DNA from: Blastocladiella emersonii ATCC 22665
Taxonomy: Eukaryota; Fungi; Blastocladiomycota
DNA length: 64,000 nucleotides
Assembly (NCBI GenBank): GCA_025594325.1
Contig: JANHCV010000013.1
Coordinates: 372,001 to 436,000 of the forward strand
Direction of reading: 5' to 3'
Made by a program: the position numbers and the translations under genes. Position 1 is the stretch's first letter, and every line of letters begins with the position of its first letter. The notes under the pieces are model-generated. The model was not told the DNA's origin. It was given only the letters and a program-made list of their open reading frames with translations, and did not search any database. This document shows, in pieces, positions 1-11,933 of this stretch.

Positions 1-1584
1 AGGGCAGGTGCACGGGACCGCACCGCACACGCGCATCGCTCATGCGGAAAGGAAAAACGTGCGACCACCGCATACCCTGTACACCGCACAGTACGTCGGG
101 CGCGTCGGCCTTCTCCACTGGGCGCTGATGCGGAGCCGTATAGCCGAGCCTACTCTAAATTGTTCTTGACCACTTGCGAGCCGGGCCACGACCGGCGCTT
201 GGTTTGTCGCCGTGTCTCCTGGGCTAGCGAGTCCGAACTCCAAAGCGTGATGTAGGCCGCCTACACGTGAACCGGCACCGATTGCGGACTGATGCGCTGA
301 TCAGGTCGCGCCTGGCGTACATACTCAAAGGGCTGCGTTTCGCGGCGCTTGGCTTCGTCGCGCGAGCACGCACGACCAGGGATCCCAACGTCAAACGAAG
401 CTCTGCACGCACCTGTAACGGAGACGCCGCAAGTAATATGCTCCTTGTGACGCATACTCCACCCGGTTTGGCTGAAAACCTTGCCTTGCTCCTCCGCGTT
501 GGCTATCCTCAGTGACCGCACGTGATGCGGCGGCGGCGCTTGTTCGACGTCGCCGCCGTTCCGACGCGAGCGTCAGGCTCCTCTGCACTCCTCCCCCCGT
601 GCCCCTGAGCTTGAACCACAGTCTATGCAATGAAGCCTTCTACGATGGAACAGCCGCCCGCAACCTTGAACCCGGCACCGGCGATTCGCGTCGTGCCCGC
701 CCGCGCTCCGCCGTACCGGGCCGCGGCCGACCTCGGCGGGCTGGTGTGGGATCCGCGAGGTACTTGCAGCCTTTCGTCTGCGTGGCTTCGTCTCCGCTCT
801 TCGAGTATACATGAGCACGGATCGCGCCATGCACCATCATCCTGCTTCTTACCCCCGCACCGACTCCCTCTCCCCCGACCGTGCCCCCATCACACGAGGA
901 ACTGCGCCTCGGTGTTTGGACGGCTCTGCCGTTGACATCAGCCCACGCGCCCGCTGCATCACATCGCCGAGGATGCGCGGCTGACCCCTAAACCTCGATT
1001 CGGCGCGGCGGCGGACACACACAACCCTCCCTCACCCACTCCCGCCTCGTCCTCCGAACCGCCACCAACCCCCACCAGCCGTCCTGACCCTCCGCAGCAC
1101 ATGGCGCGTCCCGGGCACCCTGATCGGGACGGTCCGGCGCGACCGCGGCAAGGCCGGGAAAGGCGCCGCGGCCGCCGCTGGCGAGATGGGCGACGGCATG
1201 CTCCCGGACGGCGGGCTCCCGCTGTACCTCGGACCGGCGGAGGTCGTGTACCTGCTCAGTCAAGGTGCGTGTTCTTCGCTCTCAGCGTCGCGTGATGTAC
1301 TGACTCGTTTGGCGGTGTAGGCGCGATCACGCTCGCGTGGCACGACGGCACGACCGAGATCTCCTCGCCCGCCTCTCTCCTCGCCGCGCTCGCGCTCCCC
1401 CAAAACTCGCGCAACTTCTTCGCACCCTCGTTCCGCGCCGAAGTCGCAGTCCTCTCGTCGCTGCACGGCGAACCCTTGCGGGAGATGTACACGGCGCACC
1501 CGGGCGGGTACGGGTGTACGATGCTCGCGTACCAAGGTCCGTCCATGCTCCCCGCGCGCCCTCGCACCAAACACCCCGACTCAC

Positions 1585-1760
1585 GCCGAACGTGTAGACG
1601 ACCCCATGACGTGCCACGCGGCCGCGACGGTGCACGCGGTGGCGGAACCGAGCGTCGACCTGCGCGAGTGGGTGGCGGCAGCGCGGGTCGGGTCGGCGAC
1701 GCAGAAGCGGGTCGTGTACGGTGCTCCCGCTGGCGGCGATGGCGAGGTGGGAGACTGTGA
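1585..1760 (-). pseudogene. Degenerate RCC1-like repeat fragment
   Basis: Minus strand reads AQVDARFRHRVHRRGRVARHGVVYTFG followed by a GTGAGT donor. This resembles the RCC1 repeat pattern (VQVAAGxxHS...GxVYTFG). No complete ORF. Confidence 0.25.
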
Positions 1761-2136
1761 GTGGTTGGGGGCGATTGGGAAGAACAAGGCGAGGATGTGG
1801 ACGGCAGCGTGGACGGGGTGGTAGGGTAATACATTACGCGGTGGTTCGTCAGCTGATAGTGGGGGGGGGGCGACTGAGAGAGGCGCGACGCTGCCTTGGG
1901 GTGCTGTTGGCGACGCGAGGGTCTCAGCTCTCCGCCACGTAGACGTTGACCTCTATATGAGCATGGACCATGAATCTTACTCCTCGGTGACCTGATGCAA
2001 CTTGTTTATGAGCGACTATCAGAGAGTTTGACGCAGCGGAGTGAAGCATTGCGCGACGATTCGTGGTCGGCCCAAGAGACTGCGTCGCACTTGAGCGCGA
2101 GGCGCGCAACGTCATCGCGGGACCCGATCGGGTCAG

Positions 2137-4584: not shown

Positions 4585-5322
4585 TTATTGACACGTTGCT
4601 GGGAGAGAGAGAACACGCGAGCACTTGGGCTTTGGCGGAGGAGAGCGGCCGCGACGCGTCGCCGGCAGCGGGGTGAGGTGGAAATCAAGCCCACGTGAGC
4701 GCGAGATCAGCTGCGAGGTGGGCCCACCCGGCGCATTTTGGCTGCAAACGACAATAAGGACGTCCTCCCCGCGTCGCACACGAGAAACGATCATGTACAG
4801 GAAGCGCGAAGGGAGCGATCCGTGTGTCATTTTGGCCAGGTCAACAATGACCTTGTCCAAGGTCATGCTTTGGGCCTTGTGCGGTGTCAACGCATACATG
4901 AGCTTGAGCGGGAACTGGGCTCAATGGATTGTCCTTGAGATTCTAAACTCCTTCTCCTTGAAGTGGAAAGACGTGATCGCGCAGCGCAGCGGGAAGCAAC
5001 CGTTGGGGAGGCGCAGGAGCATGGGCACGCTAAACCGTCAAAGCGGGTGTGTGGTTGACAAGGGTCGGCCAGTGGGCGGTGACGGAAGCGCTGCGTTGTG
5101 GTCGCGGGACAAGACGCTCCACGCAAAAGATTGGGGTCGAGCTGCTTCGCTGGTCGCAGGGTGCAAGCCGTTGAGGGCTAATACAAGATGTGTCGCGGTC
5201 GTTTTGTGAGCCAGAGGCGAATCCATCAAGGACGGAAGGACGGCGATACTAATGTTGGGTCCAAGCACGCGTTTGAGCTCGGCCAACAACTTCCACTCGG
5301 CGAATTCTGGCATGGAGGACAT
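4585..5322 (-). pseudogene. PIF1/RecD-like (SF1B) helicase C-terminal remnant, possibly Helitron-derived
   Basis: QFPLKLMYALTPHKAQSMTLDKVIVDL...LYMIVSRVR matches helicase motifs V-VI. The same frame upstream has two in-frame TGA stops (HPL*RFS; TIH*AQFP). Motifs I-IV not recognisable. Confidence 0.7.
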
Positions 5323-6833
5323 GCTGAGCTCGACAGGTGTGGCGGAGACAAGAAATGTGGCGGCGGCGAGAAGGGAGAGGTGCCACGGTCCTGGTTTGGT
5401 ATGTGAGCGTGATTGCGAGCCTGAAGCAAGCAGTGAAACTGTAACTTGTGGTGACCCTTCGGGTGCGCCTCGATTACGGCGATGCCGAGAATTGCAACGT
5501 GCAACGCCAAGAATCGAGTCATACGCCTTGATTGCGCGGTATATGGTCGAAATGAGAACAGGACGCGGGAGTACGCAGCGTCCTTGGCAGCAACGCGGTC
5601 AAGCATCGCCATGATGCGATTGGTGAAAGCAAAGTCCAGCCTCATTACCCTCGTAGCGTGCTCGGACGGTCGACGCTAAGAGGCGCGCGGGCGAGGATGA
5701 GCTGTAGCATCAGGTTGACGGCGGTGGCTGGCGTCGCGCCGCCAAGGGCGCCCGCGGCTGACGAGAGTCAAAGGTGTTGGCAAGTTGGCGGTAAATATTG
5801 GGGACGGCAGGTGCGAAGGTAAGGCTGAACCGGTGGGTTGGCAGCAAGCTCGGCGACAAGGCGGGAAAGCTCGCTGGGCTCAGCCGTGGCGGGTCTGCCG
5901 TTCGTCGGTTTGCCAATGAAATATGAGAAAGAAGCACGGAGCGTTCCGCACGGGTTGAACCGATGGCATGAGTGCTCATTTCAAGGTGTAGTTCTGTTGG
6001 CGCGATGAGGTGGAAAGACGGCCCCTCGAGAAATAACCGGTCCCGCCGCCGCTAAACTTTAAGTCCCACCGTTCGGGACAAGAACGGCACTGGTTGGCTC
6101 CCTTGACCAGGACGAATTTATTGCATGTAGTTTCATAGGGTGAATTTCATTGCGATTTGAGCAGTAGGGTGACAATGTTCGGCCGGGCTGGACTTGCGAT
6201 TCGGCTGGGCTCATTCCCGCATCAGCGTGACTGCCTGCCACTCCCATCGCGACGCGTTTCGACGCGTTTTGATCTCCCTGTCACACCTGAATCATCGGCT
6301 TCCTCGATTTTCTCTCACCTAAGGAATATCGGGTACGAAACTCCGTGGGCGAGGCCAAAAGAGACCCCGCACAAGCCGCTGCGGTCAGGACTGCGTCATA
6401 TCGCTTGTCAAGAATTGGAATCGCAGCGATTCGCGATGCATACGTTGGCCGATGCGCGCACGCGCGTACCGGTGGAGAAAGGCCTGGTTCCGCGATGGTT
6501 GCAGTGAACGGGGAGCGTCAGGTCCAGACTGCCGAGCAGGCCGTTGACGTTCGGGCGCTCAATTTTGAGCCCGCGTGGTAGCCGACCTCGCCAAACTGGT
6601 CTAGGGCAAGTGGTCCGGTCTTCCGAGTCGCGGTCGGTGCCTAATGCTGGTCATTTCTCCGCCACCAGTATCTCACAAATACGCTCTGATGCTTCGTTTG
6701 GTGCGCCTGTTCAAAGTCACTGATCCACCTCACTCACGCCGCAACCGGAGTTTTGATGGAAACTTCTTGTAGACACGAAAGCCAACTGAAAACAACAACA
6801 CGCGCAAGTACCCACATTCAAACACGACGCCAT

Positions 6834-9800
6834 CTAGTGGTCGGGGATCAAGTACGCCTCGAGCTCCTTGGTCGCCGCCGCGATCCCGTCCGCGTCGCTC
6901 ATGAGCTTGCTGAGCGCGATCCGCGCCTCGAGCTCGCGGCGCCCGTTCGCGCGCGACCGCCCAAGCGACAGCCGCTGCCGGGCGAGGTTGATACTCTTCT
7001 GGACACCAGCCAACCCGTGCAGCGAGTAGAGCGCGAGCCGCGTGATCGAGCGCTTGTGGTTCGGGCAGTGGTCGAGCGCGACCTTGTAGTCGGCGAGCGC
7101 GCGCTTGCGGAACATGTCGGCGTCGGCAACGCGCAGGTTGAACTCGCGCTCGGCCTCAGACATCTCCTTCCTCTTGGCCCCGTCCCGCACAAGCTTGGCG
7201 CGCTCGAGGATGAGCTCGGCCCGCGCAAAGTGCACGTCAGCGCGCCCGCCGTGGACGCGCGCGAGTTGCTGCGGGTCAAACAGGACCGCGCGGCCCGGAT
7301 GCGTCGTGTCCGCGTACGCGCGCTCGTACAGGCGGAGCGCCTCGTCGAGCTGCTTCTCGCGGAGCGCGAGCTGCTCCTGGACGGTAAGCTTGGGCTTGCC
7401 CTTGACGGCCTTGGCCGCCGCCACGGCGTCGGGCCACCCGCGCGATTCCTTGCCAAGCTGGAAGAACAGCAGGTCGCCGAGCCCCGCGCACGCGTAGTCG
7501 CAGCCCTGCTCTGCCGCCATCGCGTACAGGTGCCACGCAATGTCCCACGACTCGGACTCGGCGAGGTCGACCGCGGGCACCCGCGCGACCGCGCCGTAGT
7601 AGTACAAGTCGGCCGCCGCGACGAGCGCCATGGGCACGCTGCCCGACGCACCCGCACGAAGCAGTTTGAGGACGACTTCGCGGACGTCATAGTCGGGCTG
7701 ATCGAACGGCGTGCGCGAGATCTGGATCGGGCGTAGCGCCGAGTGGTAGAGAAAGGTCGCCTGATCGTGTGAGAGAAACCCGGACTGCTCGCCGACGGCG
7801 CGCTTGAACGTTTCAAGCTGCGTCGCGTCGATGATGGTCGCCGAGTGCGTCGTCACGTCCGTAATCATGTCAAGCTCCTGGCCCGAAAGATCGCTGGCCG
7901 CCGCACCGACCGTGGTCCGCAGTTTGCCAAGCACGAGCTCAAGGACGTTGACGGTATTCGCAATCGAAAGCGCATCGTCGCCGTCACCGGTCGGAACAAG
8001 CGACGCCTTCTCGATCGACTCAACAAGCACACGCAGCGGGTGAATGGGTGTATCGTTGGTCGGATCATCATCCAAGTCGCGCTCAGAGATTTCGTCCGTG
8101 ACGACGTGGTCGCGGATAAGCTTAGCCAGCGCGAGCATGTCGGCCTGCATCTTCTCGAGGAGCGGAAGCGGCTGAGAGTCACCATCGAGGCCCGCAATCG
8201 GAAGCTTGGCCTGCGCGTACCCGAGCCCTGGGTTGCGAGTAAACACGACGCGGTCCGCCGCGAGTCCAACGGGAAGCAGCTCGGACTGCATCAGGTACAG
8301 GGCGCCATGGAGCTCGGCCAAGCCGTTGGAAAGATCAAACAGCGCCTGGACTCGATCAACAAGCGGCAGATCATCAAGTCGAAGGTCGGGCAGAACGCGC
8401 TCAGCGACGATGCCCCAGCTGCCGCCAGTTGCGCCAGAAGGCGGAAGGACGCCGTACACGCGGCGCGAGTGCGAGAAAGTCACGGATGGCATTGAAGCGA
8501 TGGTAAGCGTCGAGAGGACGGCCTCGGCGCGGTCAGCGGGGCACTCGAGCAGCTCCACGTCCTCGGCGCCAAAAAGCAAAGCATGACCCCACGGAGAGCG
8601 ACCGGAGCCGTTCGCCAGCTCAACGTCGGACCAGTCAAAAAAAACCTGGCTGAAGAGTCCCTCGGTGTGTTCCGCGGCGGCCGTGTCAATCAGCTCAAGC
8701 ACGCGCTTCTGGTTCGACATGGCCGCGACCGCGTCAGCGCTCGCCGCAGCAAGCGCCTTCGGACCAAACTTGAGCCCCTTGACAGCATCCTCGGACAAAA
8801 CACCAAGCCCGAGCTTCTTGGCCGCGGCAAGCAGGGAAGCTTGGGCATTGGCCAAGGCGGCCGGGAACGAAGTGCTAAACTTGATCGCGACCTCAGAAAG
8901 CGCATCGGCCTCGCCCTCCTCGCTCCAATCGTTGCCGCGCGCCATCGCCAGCGCCTCGCTCACAGCCTTGGCGGGCAAGTCAAGCGCGTCGAGAAATTTT
9001 TGAAAGCGCGCCGGCGGCTTCCCTGCGGCCGCCCAGCCAAACTTCGGCGCGATCACGCGCGCGTAATCGAGCGTGGTCTCGCCGCGTGGGCCCGTGAGTC
9101 CAAGGTGCTCGAGAAGGCGGGACACGGTGGTCTCGGCGAGCTCGATGGCCTTGTCCGCGGCGCTGCGGCCAATCGTAAGGTCGGAAGCAAGGCGGCGCAG
9201 CGTCGCGCACTTGGTCTCGGCGAACACGACCCAGCCGGCGTACTTCCACACGAGCCAGTCGGGAAGCAAAAGCGTCGCTGGATCAAGGTTGGCATCAAAG
9301 TCGGCCTGCGGGCCGTTGGTCGGGCGCGAGGGAAGCGGGAAAGCCTTGTCTAGCCGAAGCACCGAAACGCGAGCTGACCGGCTGCTGCCCGCCATGCGCG
9401 AGACGCACTCGAGGTCGTCCATCGACACGGCGTCGCTGTGGTGGGAAATGAACCGCTCGATGGCCAAGCAGGCAGCGGTCCGCGCCTCGGCGTTGCTGGC
9501 AAAGAATTCGGCATAAAGCTGGTCAATCGCGCCTGGCAACGAGGCCTCGAACATTTCCAAGTCGAGCAAGTGCGACGCGCCCTGCGGCACAATGTGCTTC
9601 CAGAGCGCCGCGATCTGCGGGTTGGCAATGTCCTTGAGGAACGGCGACACGATTTGAAGCTCCTTGACGGCCGCCTGGATTTCAAGGATGAGCTGAAGCT
9701 GCTGTTTCTGCGACGCCTGGTGCTGCTCGAGAAGTGCCAAAGCACGCGCGGTCTTGTCGGCCTGGCGCTCGAGCGCGTTGAAGTTAGGAGCTGCGACCTT

Positions 9801-10704
9801 CGACGCCTCGCTCGTCTCGCGAGTGACACGGCGCTGGATCGCAATCGAGGCGACCGACGTGTGCGCGTGCAAGTCCTGCAGCATCTCGTCAACGCACTGG
9901 TCCAGGTCCTTGAGGTCGCGCTGGAAGCTGTCGGCAAACCACGCGCGCTTGAAGCCGCCCGTGTCGGCGAAAGCGTCCAAGTCGGCGGTCACCTTCTGCA
10001 TCAGCGACGTCGAGTGCTCGAGTCGCTCAAAGAAGAGGTTGAGGTGGTGCTGCGAAAGCGCGTTGCCCGCGGCGCCCGAAATCCGGTCGTGCAAGTCCTG
10101 CACGATGTTGATGATCGACTGCAGCTTGCTGTACACGACCTGCGTCGTCATGAGGTTCCCAAGCGAGGTCTGCCGGACGCGCTCGAAACTACGCATCGTG
10201 CCCGAGTCCCGAAAGTCAGTTACGTGGCGGTCAAGGCGGCTCCGCTCGTCGTACGTACGCAGTCAAACAATTCCAGATCGGACCCGTGGCCTTGAGCGGC
10301 TTGATAAAGGGCACCATGGCGACCTGGACGGCCGGGTGGGAGAACACATCAAAGACGCGAACCGCGTCGCAGCGGCGCTTGAGGGCGGCCTTGCGCAGCC
10401 GGACCTCGTCGCCGTTGAGGTCCGACTTGAGCGAGGTCAGGCGCGTCGCCATGTCTGGTTCGCACCCGGCCTGCTCAGCCGCACCACCGTGAGCGACGAG
10501 TGCATGCTCGCCGTCGCCGTCGCTGTCGCTGTCGCTGTCCTGGTGGCGGCGCACGGGGGCTGTCGGCGCCGGGCGGTGGACCACGGCGTCGGGGGACTGC
10601 AACATCATCGTGGTTCTGCAGAGGATCGTCGGGGGGAGCGCGGGCGGGGAGCTCGGTCCTCGCGAGTCGGTGCTGCATGGTCCGAGCTGGTTCGAGCTCT
10701 GCAC
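6834..10704 (-). CDS. About 1250-aa protein: N-terminal MLKL-like helical bundle, degenerate pseudokinase, C-terminal Sel1/TPR-like repeats
   Basis: ORF 10231-10704 splices in frame to the 1120-aa ORF through intron 10189-10258 (GTACGT...CTGAC...TAG; NCLT-A-FERV). N-terminus VPFIKPL...GGFKRAWFADSFQRDLKDLDQ resembles MLKL_NTD-type bundles. Middle RVYGV...WGIVAERV...ALFDLSNGLAELH...AKL is kinase-like without VAIK/HRD/DFG. C-terminus AAADLYYYG, YAMAAEQGCDYACAGLG, LALYSLHG are Sel1-like. Start codon uncertain (10704 or 10608). Confidence 0.7.
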
Positions 10705-10952
10705 ACCGCACGGTTGACGCGGTGCCGCTCGCCCTGCACCGCGCTCGCTGGCCGCGGTGCACTCGGCGTTCGCCTCAAGTCACCGCGCCTCGGGCGGGCG
10801 CTTCGGTGCTGACCGACGACGACAAGGCAGACCTGTGTGTCAGCAGTTCGACTGCAGAGGCACTAGCAGCAGTATCCTGAGAGAAGCTGTGTACCCAGTA
10901 CTAACGAATTCTTACACAAATGCGATTCAGAAACACATCATCATCCGGCACA

Positions 10953-11933
10953 TCAACCCAGGAGCTCGTTGACCTTGGCCAGCGCGTTCTTGATCTCGGG
11001 CTCGACATCGACCAGGTCCGAGTCCTCGGCGGAAAATTCGAGGTCGAGGATGACGGACACGAGCTCCGAGGCGATGGACTCAGCAGCGGGGTCGTTGTGG
11101 TCGATGAACATGGCCTCCTGGACCTCGCTGATGACGGCGGCGAGTCCCGACAGCTCGCTCGCGGGCCCGTTCTCCGGGTCGGCGGCGTGGGACTCGGGCT
11201 CGCACATGTACAGCACGTCGAGCTGCGCGCGTAGGTCGGGCAGCGAGATGTACACGTTGCTCGACGAGATGCGCAGCGGGCGGTTGAGGAACATGGGCCG
11301 GTCGCCGCCGAGCTTGGTGTTGGCGCGCGTGTGCCAAATCAGCGCGGCCTGCAGCACGTCGCGCACCCACAGCAGCGCGAGCTTGGGCGTCAGCGGCGTG
11401 GTCGACGGTTTGAGCGAGATGCGCTGCCCGAGCGCCGCAGGACCGGCGGCGCCATCGTCGCACGACATGGTCTTGCCCGTGTTGGCCTTGGTCGCGGGCG
11501 ACAAGGCGCGCTCCTTGCCCGCCTCGTTCCACTGGCGCAGCAGCGACGCGAGCGAGCCGGCGCCTGCGGGCGTCGCGACCAGGAGCGTGTTCTTGTTGGC
11601 GCCGTCGCCGGCGATGCCCGCGATCAGGACGACCTGGCGGTGCGACACGGCGAAGGCGGCGAGCGAGAGGAGGTCGACGAGCAGCTCCGCCTTGGCCTCG
11701 GTGTCGTCGGCGTCGCTCGGCGAGAGGGCGCGCACGACCACGACGGCATCGTCGTTGCCCTTGAAGGCGAGCCACCGCGCGTGGTTCTTGGCCGGCGCGG
11801 GCGCGGGCGCATCGGCAGACGTGACGGGACGGCGTTCGCGGAACGACTCGGCGGGGCACCACATGGCGCCGAGGATCGACTCGTACAGCGCGCCGCTCGC
11901 GACTTCGAGGATTTCGGCTTCGGTGTTGGTCAT
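10953..11933 (-). CDS. Stand-alone 326-aa pseudokinase-like protein
   Basis: Intronless ORF with strong GC3 bias. Kinase-fold order: VVVRAL (VAIK position), ELLVDLLSL, HRQVVLIAG, LLVATPAGAGSLASLL, LLWVRDVLQAALIWH, NRPLRISSSNVYI. Catalytic K, HRD and DFG absent. Confidence 0.6.
   Translation of the reverse strand: MTNTEAEILEVASGALYESILGAMWCPAESFRERRPVTSADAPAPAPAKNHARWLAFKGNDDAVVVVRALSPSDADDTEAKAELLVDLLSLAAFAVSHRQVVLIAGIAGDGANKNTLLVATPAGAGSLASLLRQWNEAGKERALSPATKANTGKTMSCDDGAAGPAALGQRISLKPSTTPLTPKLALLWVRDVLQAALIWHTRANTKLGGDRPMFLNRPLRISSSNVYISLPDLRAQLDVLYMCEPESHAADPENGPASELSGLAAVISEVQEAMFIDHNDPAAESIASELVSVILDLEFSAEDSDLVDVEPEIKNALAKVNELLG

Follow-up and report, generated by a model that had tools for sequence, protein, structure and literature searches.

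Proteins of the MLKL type, in which a helical bundle is combined with a pseudokinase, are cell-death executioners in animals and plants, and related bundles act likewise in filamentous fungi. For fungi, a 2025 review mentions HELL domains fused to kinase or pseudokinase domains (PMC12881547), and in a survey of the MLKL family (TCDB 1.A.105) members with Sel1 repeats were found exclusively in Glomeromycotina (PMC8778642). Here we describe a locus of Blastocladiella emersonii ATCC 22665, situated in a stretch of 64,000 nucleotides (C5:372001-436000, hereafter the window), in which a large gene encoding a predicted N-terminal helical bundle, a probable dead kinase remnant and Sel1-like repeats stands next to a small gene for a stand-alone pseudokinase. 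A cluster of three genes, the small gene and two large genes of the subtypes A and B, recurs in the genome, and the locus is one of its copies; the anciently conserved core of the cluster is the A-B pair. The relationship of the large protein to MLKL is plausible but unproven.

On the minus strand of the window two open reading frames (ORFs), 6834-10196 (1120 aa) and 10953-11933 (326 aa), are both open, and the genes to which they belong are real and intact. The coding frames are marked by the GC content at third codon positions (GC3), which is 0.82 for the large and 0.93 for the small gene, with GC1 above GC2, and they are backed by paralogues at E 1e-81 to 1e-262, confirming what an earlier note on this DNA had read from the letters, namely two co-oriented intact genes. 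Long ORFs in other frames overlap both genes, which is to be expected at a GC content of 63-66%. A profile built from the large protein and two of its paralogues, scored against 1.84 billion representative sequences, gave 8 matches, all of them from Blastocladiomycota (B. emersonii, B. britannica, Catenaria anguillulae and Allomyces), so far as sequence profiles can tell the range to which the large-protein family is restricted. Three subtypes can be distinguished: A, with the window gene, P0002 and Catenaria P0008; B, with P0003, P0006, P0007 and P0012; and C, with Allomyces P0009 (A. macrogynus KNE55465.1), B. britannica P0010 (KAI9218733.1) and a B. emersonii gene on contig C17. The B-type paralogues are called 'RIPK3' by NCBI, a name that we discarded as a lead, as they have no Pfam kinase match and the public B. 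emersonii annotation is ab initio (funannotate). The features of the two window genes are given below, where residue numbers of the large protein refer to the 1120-aa exon-2 ORF; the exons were searched separately, and P0001 was used as the full-length sequence.

6834..10608 (-), large A-type gene, equal to NCBI H9P43_008983 (P0001, 1209 aa)
6834..10188 (-), exon 2 of the A-type gene, with the stop codon at 6834-6836, 1117 whole codons and the last base of a split codon
10189..10258 (-), intron of the A-type gene, 70 nt, GT..AG, joining the split codon in frame
10259..10608 (-), exon 1 of the A-type gene, start uncertain (ATG at 10608/10605 or at 10452)
9660..10187 (-), predicted N-terminal helical bundle, exon-2 part, ORF residues 4-179, with helices 2-38, 46-72, 86-110 and 118-176 in the AlphaFold2 (AF2) model
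9225..9647 (-), EF-hand-like helical subdomain, ORF residues 184-324, predicted local distance difference test (pLDDT) 73-87
8631..9224 (-), middle helical region between the bundle module and the kinase-like region, ORF residues 325-522, homologous to the C-type
8028..8630 (-), probable degenerate kinase-derived region, ORF residues 523-723, in the same place as the Pfam-positive pseudokinase of the C-type
6837..7748 (-), Sel1/TPR-like repeat region, ORF residues 817-1120, with homology to the C-terminus of the C-type
10953..11933 (-), small gene, 326 aa, single exon, GC3 0.93
10956..11432 (-), predicted kinase C-lobe-like half of the small protein, residues 168-326

The architecture of the large protein put forward in the earlier note, a helical bundle followed by a dead kinase and Sel1-like repeats, is largely right, and it is the comparison with the C-type proteins that carries it. 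Neither window protein has a Pfam match, in searches that also covered the paralogues and single N-terminal pieces, and the Sel1 and TPR models gave no match on the window protein itself. The C-type, in turn, is matched by the Pfam model PK_Tyr_Ser-Thr at E 4.9e-16, shows several TPR matches and a Sel1 score of 28.8 bits, just below the cut-off of 30.7, and finds kinases and consensus TPR structures as its structural matches; since HRC replaces HRD and DFG is absent, with APE kept, the C-type is also a pseudokinase. The A- and B-type proteins are collinear with the C-type over 978 columns (hhalign E 1.6e-27), with E values of 3.9e-16 for the N-terminal domain, 1.5e-4 for the middle helical region, 0.041 for the kinase-like region and 3.6e-17 for the repeat region. 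Judged by these profile alignments, the N-terminal and the Sel1-like parts of the large protein are securely homologous to those of the C-type. The proposed architecture holds in outline, with helices modelled at the N-terminus and repeats homologous to those of the Sel1/TPR-bearing C-type (E 3.6e-17), but the kinase region is weak and the Sel1 part is without a Pfam match. No known family was found for the middle helical region (residues 325-522), and sequence searches of the PDB with the profiles of the whole family, the small protein and the kinase-like region returned no kinase, TPR or MLKL match.

Region 523-723 of the large protein is probably kinase-derived, because of its position between homologous flanks and because of hhalign matches that are weak yet in register. 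Against kinases and the C-type these matches are collinear over 114-139 columns at E 0.015-0.041 (three true kinases, E 0.036; 21 true kinases, E 0.017 over 139 columns; C-type, E 0.015), compared with 6-32 columns at E 0.044-0.6 for reversed and other-domain controls, one of which (reversed C-type, 10 columns, E 0.044) comes near the weakest real value. In this register beta-3, beta-4/5, helix E, the catalytic loop and helix F follow one another correctly; along it VAIK corresponds to VELL, the Asp of HRD is lost, the Asn of the catalytic loop is kept and DFG corresponds to IAG or PPG. The strings GxGxxG, HRD and DFG occur in no paralogue of either protein, and no VAIK-like lysine motif is present inside the kinase-like region.

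The small protein has three distinct paralogues, all in B. emersonii (identities 49% and 41%), and none of the three contains a canonical catalytic motif. Structural modelling indicates that it has a kinase C-lobe fold. The AF2 model, calculated from three sequences, reaches a pLDDT of 46, and with the N-lobe below 50 only the C-lobe is usable; for this C-terminal half (residues 154/171-326) the top 50 of 48,161 chains compared by VIA-align are all kinases, with Z 8.3-10.2 and root-mean-square deviations (rmsd) mostly of 2.9-4 Å (up to 8.4 Å) over 122-150 residues, among them RIPK, IRAK, TGF-beta receptor and MLKL. Foldseek likewise lists kinases in all top 50 places, with weak E values of 0.07-0.2, and the ten best language-model neighbours with an assigned family are all kinases (0.95). 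Pfam, the PDB sequence search and hhalign gave nothing significant for the small protein; its comparison by hhalign with the large family, the C-type and 3 or 21 true kinases reached E 0.052 at best, which is not significant, over 38 columns where helix C to the hinge region would be expected. The description of a 326-aa kinase-fold protein without K, HRD and DFG is thereby upheld, the fold assignment applying to the C-lobe.

With regard to genomic context, the small, A and B genes stand together at three distinct clusters, C16:938885-948800, C11:2288734-2297361 and the C5 cluster of the window, and a second, inverted and almost identical copy of the C11 cluster is located at 2377330-2385957. 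In the C16 and C11 clusters the small gene and A stand tail-to-tail, 1.5 and 0.2 kb apart respectively, and A and B are arranged head-to-head, their start codons being separated by 242 and 264 bp. At C5 the small gene has the same orientation as A and lies upstream of it at a distance of 345 bp, and the head-to-head A-B pair is broken: B is found beyond the window, about 9.6 kb downstream of A, in an arm of a 99.97%-identical inverted repeat. The head-to-head arrangement recurs in Catenaria, where the A-like P0008 (ORZ39117.1) faces a B-like gene; this B-type gene of the family (MCFL01000006.1, L017:4010-7507, minus strand) is located where no gene is called. Homologues of the small gene were found in B. 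emersonii and in no other species. The two-gene module suggested before is accordingly only partly recovered: the small gene is linked to A at all three distinct clusters, but the recurrent unit comprises three genes, and the part shared across genera is the A-B pair. The further idea that this module contains no active kinase is borne out, since there is none within the three-gene cluster and the small, A and B genes all lack catalytic motifs.

The N-terminal part decides how closely the family may be compared with MLKL. The AF2 model of its exon-2 part (m431210a5919f, 322 aa, folded with 13 family sequences) consists of four long antiparallel helices followed by a better-modelled helical subdomain (181-321), in which no canonical calcium loop is seen. 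As reference we used a profile of the two strong MLKL_N domains of B. emersonii, both on contig C15. Aligned by hhalign with the N-domain of the family, these two genuine domains gave E 3.5e-5 (probability 72%, 64 columns), a match which spans helices 3-4 and thus half of the domain, compared with E 0.013-0.48 for eight reversed or other-domain controls. A noisier set of four MLKL_N sequences, aligned with the whole large protein, found the same stretch of helices 3-4 as its best match (E 0.0046), and MLKL_N clusters of Mucoromycota are among the language-model neighbours of the first 394 residues (score 0.91). On these profile matches, the bundle of the large protein is likely a distant relative of MLKL_N.

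The genes that carry the two reference domains (C15:1434741-1438532, locus L020, C15:1433000-1441000; and C15:1555205-1558981, locus L021, C15:1552000-1560500) encode MLKL_N, at 58 and 49 bits, followed by an intact tyrosine kinase-like (TKL) kinase and then by about 700 aa of C-terminal sequence, and their kinase domains have the two best PK_Tyr_Ser-Thr scores in the genome. In addition, a 302-aa ORF at C17:599071-599979 (L023:3072-3980, plus strand) shows a weak MLKL_N match of 18 bits together with a stretch resembling the start of the EF-hand-like module of the family (hhalign E 0.0089), and may be a bridging relative.

Taken together, we regard it as quite possible, if still tentative, that the large protein joins an MLKL_N-related bundle to a dead kinase and repeats, is encoded in a three-gene cluster specific to Blastocladiomycota and acts in an MLKL-like manner. 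In such a protein the bundle and the EF-hand-like module would form the effector end, the helical linker and the reduced dead kinase the switch, and the C-terminal Sel1/TPR-like repeats the end that binds a partner or ligand. By analogy with MLKL, the dead kinase would hold the bundle inactive, until a signal sensed via the repeats or via partner proteins frees the bundle, which could then oligomerise or act on a membrane. A and B might act jointly, as hinted by the promoter of 242-264 bp that they share at the C16 and C11 clusters, and the small pseudokinase might bind the kinase-like region as a regulator. Because the cluster contains no active kinase, activation would not come by RIPK3-style phosphorylation from within it. 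A role in cell death or immunity is what we infer from this analogy only.

Several observations weigh against an MLKL-like reading. The large protein is formally not a member of PF22215, the MLKL_N family of Pfam (gathering score 27 bits), as neither whole proteins nor N-terminal pieces matched it at E up to 10, and a genome-wide search with the same model found four other loci, none of them of the A/B/C family. The N-terminal model does not include the part encoded by exon 1, and its pLDDT is no higher than 67; searched with Foldseek and VIA-align, it found generic bundles only (FliT, talin, syntaxin, WeiTsing and the CC domain of an NLR) at Z 6.7-10.8, values up to 10.8 being rated as unspecific for helical models by the VIA-align tool, and MLKL is absent from the top 50 structural matches of this model, which lacks exon 1. 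The expectation that the N-terminus would model as an MLKL N-terminal or HeLo domain is favoured by the helical bundle and its profile similarity (E 3.5e-5), and the structure searches and PF22215 lend it no support. For HeLo-like domains, PF17111 (expected to be HeLo-like, now named PigL_N) matched nothing in the genome, and the HeLo model PF14479 was not separately searched. Furthermore, the kinase-like region has no significant match of its own, the best being the weak hhalign value of E 0.015, and no Pfam or PDB sequence match, even when a profile of this region alone was compared with the PDB; about 400 residues separate it from the bundle, against the short brace of MLKL. The small and the large protein have no detectable similarity in profile comparisons, and no homologue of the small gene stands beside the Catenaria A-B pair, so that the linkage expected in relatives is seen among the clusters of one genome but does not extend to the small gene in Catenaria.

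An alternative that deserves weight, although we find it rather doubtful, is that these are non-lethal signalling scaffolds, in which the N-terminus serves as an oligomerisation or adaptor module comparable to the TKB domain of Cbl and the dead kinase and repeats assemble partners, e.g., in zoospore or sporulation signalling; the likeness to MLKL would then reflect a shared ancestry of the bundle without killing. The generic bundles among the structural matches agree with this, as do the Sel1-like repeats, which are general adaptor modules, and among multi-part matches only the four-helix and EF-hand part of the Cbl TKB domain recurred, even if the similarity to Cbl and the scaffold role are themselves inference. 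The genome also joins MLKL_N to active kinases with long C-termini, and the bundle is thus common in its signalling proteins. However, Z scores of 7-8 for Cbl lie in a range common for helical models, whereas the profile similarity points to MLKL_N in particular, and several diverged paralogues that combine an effector at the N-terminus, a switch in the centre and repeats at the C-terminus follow the pattern of immune or cell-death receptors (PMC12881547). In the opposite direction, it seems improbable to us that the cluster is a complete kinase-dead, three-component MLKL-type cell-death or immune switch, with A and B, transcribed from a single bidirectional promoter, as sensor and executioner in a hetero-oligomer, the stand-alone pseudokinase as inhibitor or decoy, a pseudokinase in the role of the NOD module of NLRs, and an A-B pair kept since the divergence of Blastocladiella and Catenaria.

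The linkage of the small and large genes might also be inherited merely by block duplication of one ancestral cluster, with no functional tie between them. Every linked copy is a paralogue within one genome, of the four places two are inverted duplicates with almost no differences, and both the restriction of the small gene to B. emersonii, away from the Catenaria pair, and its dissimilarity to the large protein fit this view. We nevertheless consider linkage by descent alone unlikely, because the small gene stays within 0.2-1.5 kb of A although the three clusters have diverged to 41-51% protein identity and have undergone rearrangement of gene order and direction (head-to-tail at C5, tail-to-tail at the other two). 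That the genes are decaying or non-functional kinase relics, kept open only by the scarcity of stop codons in GC-rich DNA, is very improbable and largely refuted. Overlapping ORFs of 240-336 aa do occur in other frames of the same DNA, and the kinase-like parts are extremely degenerate, yet an ORF of 1120 aa is far beyond chance, GC3 and the excess of GC1 over GC2 mark the proposed frames, many residues are invariant across paralogues of only 30-50% identity, and homologues occur in three genera with a conserved intron position. Of these readings we prefer the MLKL-like one.

The gene model of the A-type gene rests on several features. Exon 2 matches H9P43_008983/P0001 at 100%, with a GC1/2/3 of 0.69/0.44/0.82. 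The in-frame splice at 10189-10258 that the earlier note proposed (GT..AG, 70 nt) was confirmed, as exactly this junction is present in the NCBI protein P0001, and the intron position is found in the A-type paralogue P0002 and in the Allomyces homologue as well. Exon 1 lies within the ORF 10231-10704, in another frame than exon 2 and in frame with it after splicing; it has a GC3 of 0.83-0.88, is conserved in P0002, P0008 and P0009, and encodes a basic helix and a hydrophobic stretch followed by the first helix of the bundle. The 5' end of the NCBI model H9P43_008983 (window 10453-10704) is doubtful, because it requires an implausible intron of 14 nt, and an in-frame ATG at 10608 or 10452 is a more plausible start. 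The protein would have 1182 aa with ATG 10452 and 1234 aa with ATG 10608, compared with 1209 aa in the NCBI model, and the length of about 1250 aa given previously is not borne out as it stands, the value depending on the start codon. The apparent decay of other genes in the region, as it had been described, is probably an effect of introns, since the B. emersonii genome contains about 19,000 of them (PMC9730499).

The intron that splits the first helix of the bundle is common to the A-type genes and the Allomyces C-type gene (window 10189-10258; L006; L018:6238-6532); the C-type genes of Blastocladiella do not have it. P0002 and Catenaria P0008 share a further intron, in helix 4, which the A gene of the window lacks. 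The whole N-domain in one exon was sought in Catenaria, Allomyces, B. britannica and the paralogues, where it is split throughout; only the B. emersonii C-type gene (L058, C17:1565500-1574500) has it intact, at 4777-5844 on the minus strand. This gene stands head-to-head with an intact CaMK-like kinase gene, whose ORF (5862-7268, plus strand) starts 18 bp from the start codon of the C-type gene; the real ATG of this neighbour lies further downstream than 5862, and the neighbour is not conserved in Allomyces.

As for the surroundings of the clusters, the two arms of the giant inverted repeat on C5 (window 1-1823, C5:358534-373823, versus C5:481539-495000 or beyond) share 99.97% identity along 13.5 kb or more. 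On its inner side the repeat ends at window position 1823, and the window is contained in the spacer of about 108 kb; each arm holds an identical copy of a B-type paralogue, and the left arm has an insertion of 1.8 kb. The repeat on C11 (C11:2288344-2298543 and 2376148-2386347; loci L003/L004, L007/L008 and L010/L011) shows 99.94-100% identity, which stops about 1.2 kb past the B gene, with a spacer of about 78 kb. Of the three distinct clusters, those on C5 and C11 are thus both located at large palindromes that are nearly perfect.

If the bundle kills cells or targets membranes, how necroptosis-like effectors arose in the fungal lineage would become directly testable, and the large protein would represent a receptor of repeat sensor, switch and effector built on a dead kinase in place of a NOD ATPase; if it does neither, the family would still offer a clear example of how far a pseudokinase can degenerate within a gene pair that is conserved.

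Among the systems with which the window protein can be compared, the C-type proteins are collinear with it from end to end, and the intron position is common to the Allomyces C-type gene. Unlike the window protein, the C-type has a pseudokinase that is still recognisable by Pfam, and its gene is single-copy and not clustered with B or small genes. The two MLKL_N genes on C15 show, in one and the same genome, the same order of an N-terminal bundle and a kinase domain, but they pass the Pfam cut-off for MLKL_N, their kinases are intact (GxGxxG, VAIK, HRD, DFG and APE), and their C-termini are of another kind, without Sel1-like repeats. The TKB domain of Cbl (four-helix bundle, EF-hand and SH2) resembles the window protein in the order of a bundle and an EF-hand-like module, and the Cbl EF-hand superposes on the EF-hand-like part with Z 7.3-7.5 and an rmsd of 2.5-2.7 Å over 84-87 residues, a Z in the range common for helical models. 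The two parts are, however, oriented otherwise, giving an overall rmsd of about 24 Å, and the window protein has no SH2 or RING domain and no sequence similarity to Cbl.

Vertebrate MLKL, composed of the PF22215 four-helix bundle, a brace and a pseudokinase, has the order of N-terminal bundle and dead kinase that is predicted for the window protein. In the window protein the two-helix brace is replaced by about 400 residues (the EF-hand-like module and the helical region), the probable kinase remnant is far more reduced, to about 200 residues, and Sel1-like repeats are added at the C-terminus; moreover, in contrast to the RIPK3-MLKL pair, the cluster has no RIPK3-like active kinase. The fungal fusions of HELL or HeLo with a (pseudo)kinase and the plant MLKLs (PMC12881547; bioRxiv 10.1101/681015) are alike in joining a putative bundle-type membrane effector to a (pseudo)kinase outside animals, yet no amyloid motif or NLR partner was seen in the window family, and neither Sel1-like repeats nor paired A-B genes are described for them. 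The MLKL family of Glomeromycotina (PMC8778642) is similar by description only, combining an MLKL-type kinase region with Sel1 repeats in early-diverging fungi, and that survey missed the Blastocladiomycota family, probably on account of its sub-threshold Pfam domains. From the HELL-kinase and the Glomeromycotina designs alike, the window family differs by domains below Pfam thresholds, the EF-hand-like insert, paired genes and an extra pseudokinase, and it places the probable combination of bundle and dead kinase, together with Sel1-type repeats, in zoosporic, early-diverging fungi.

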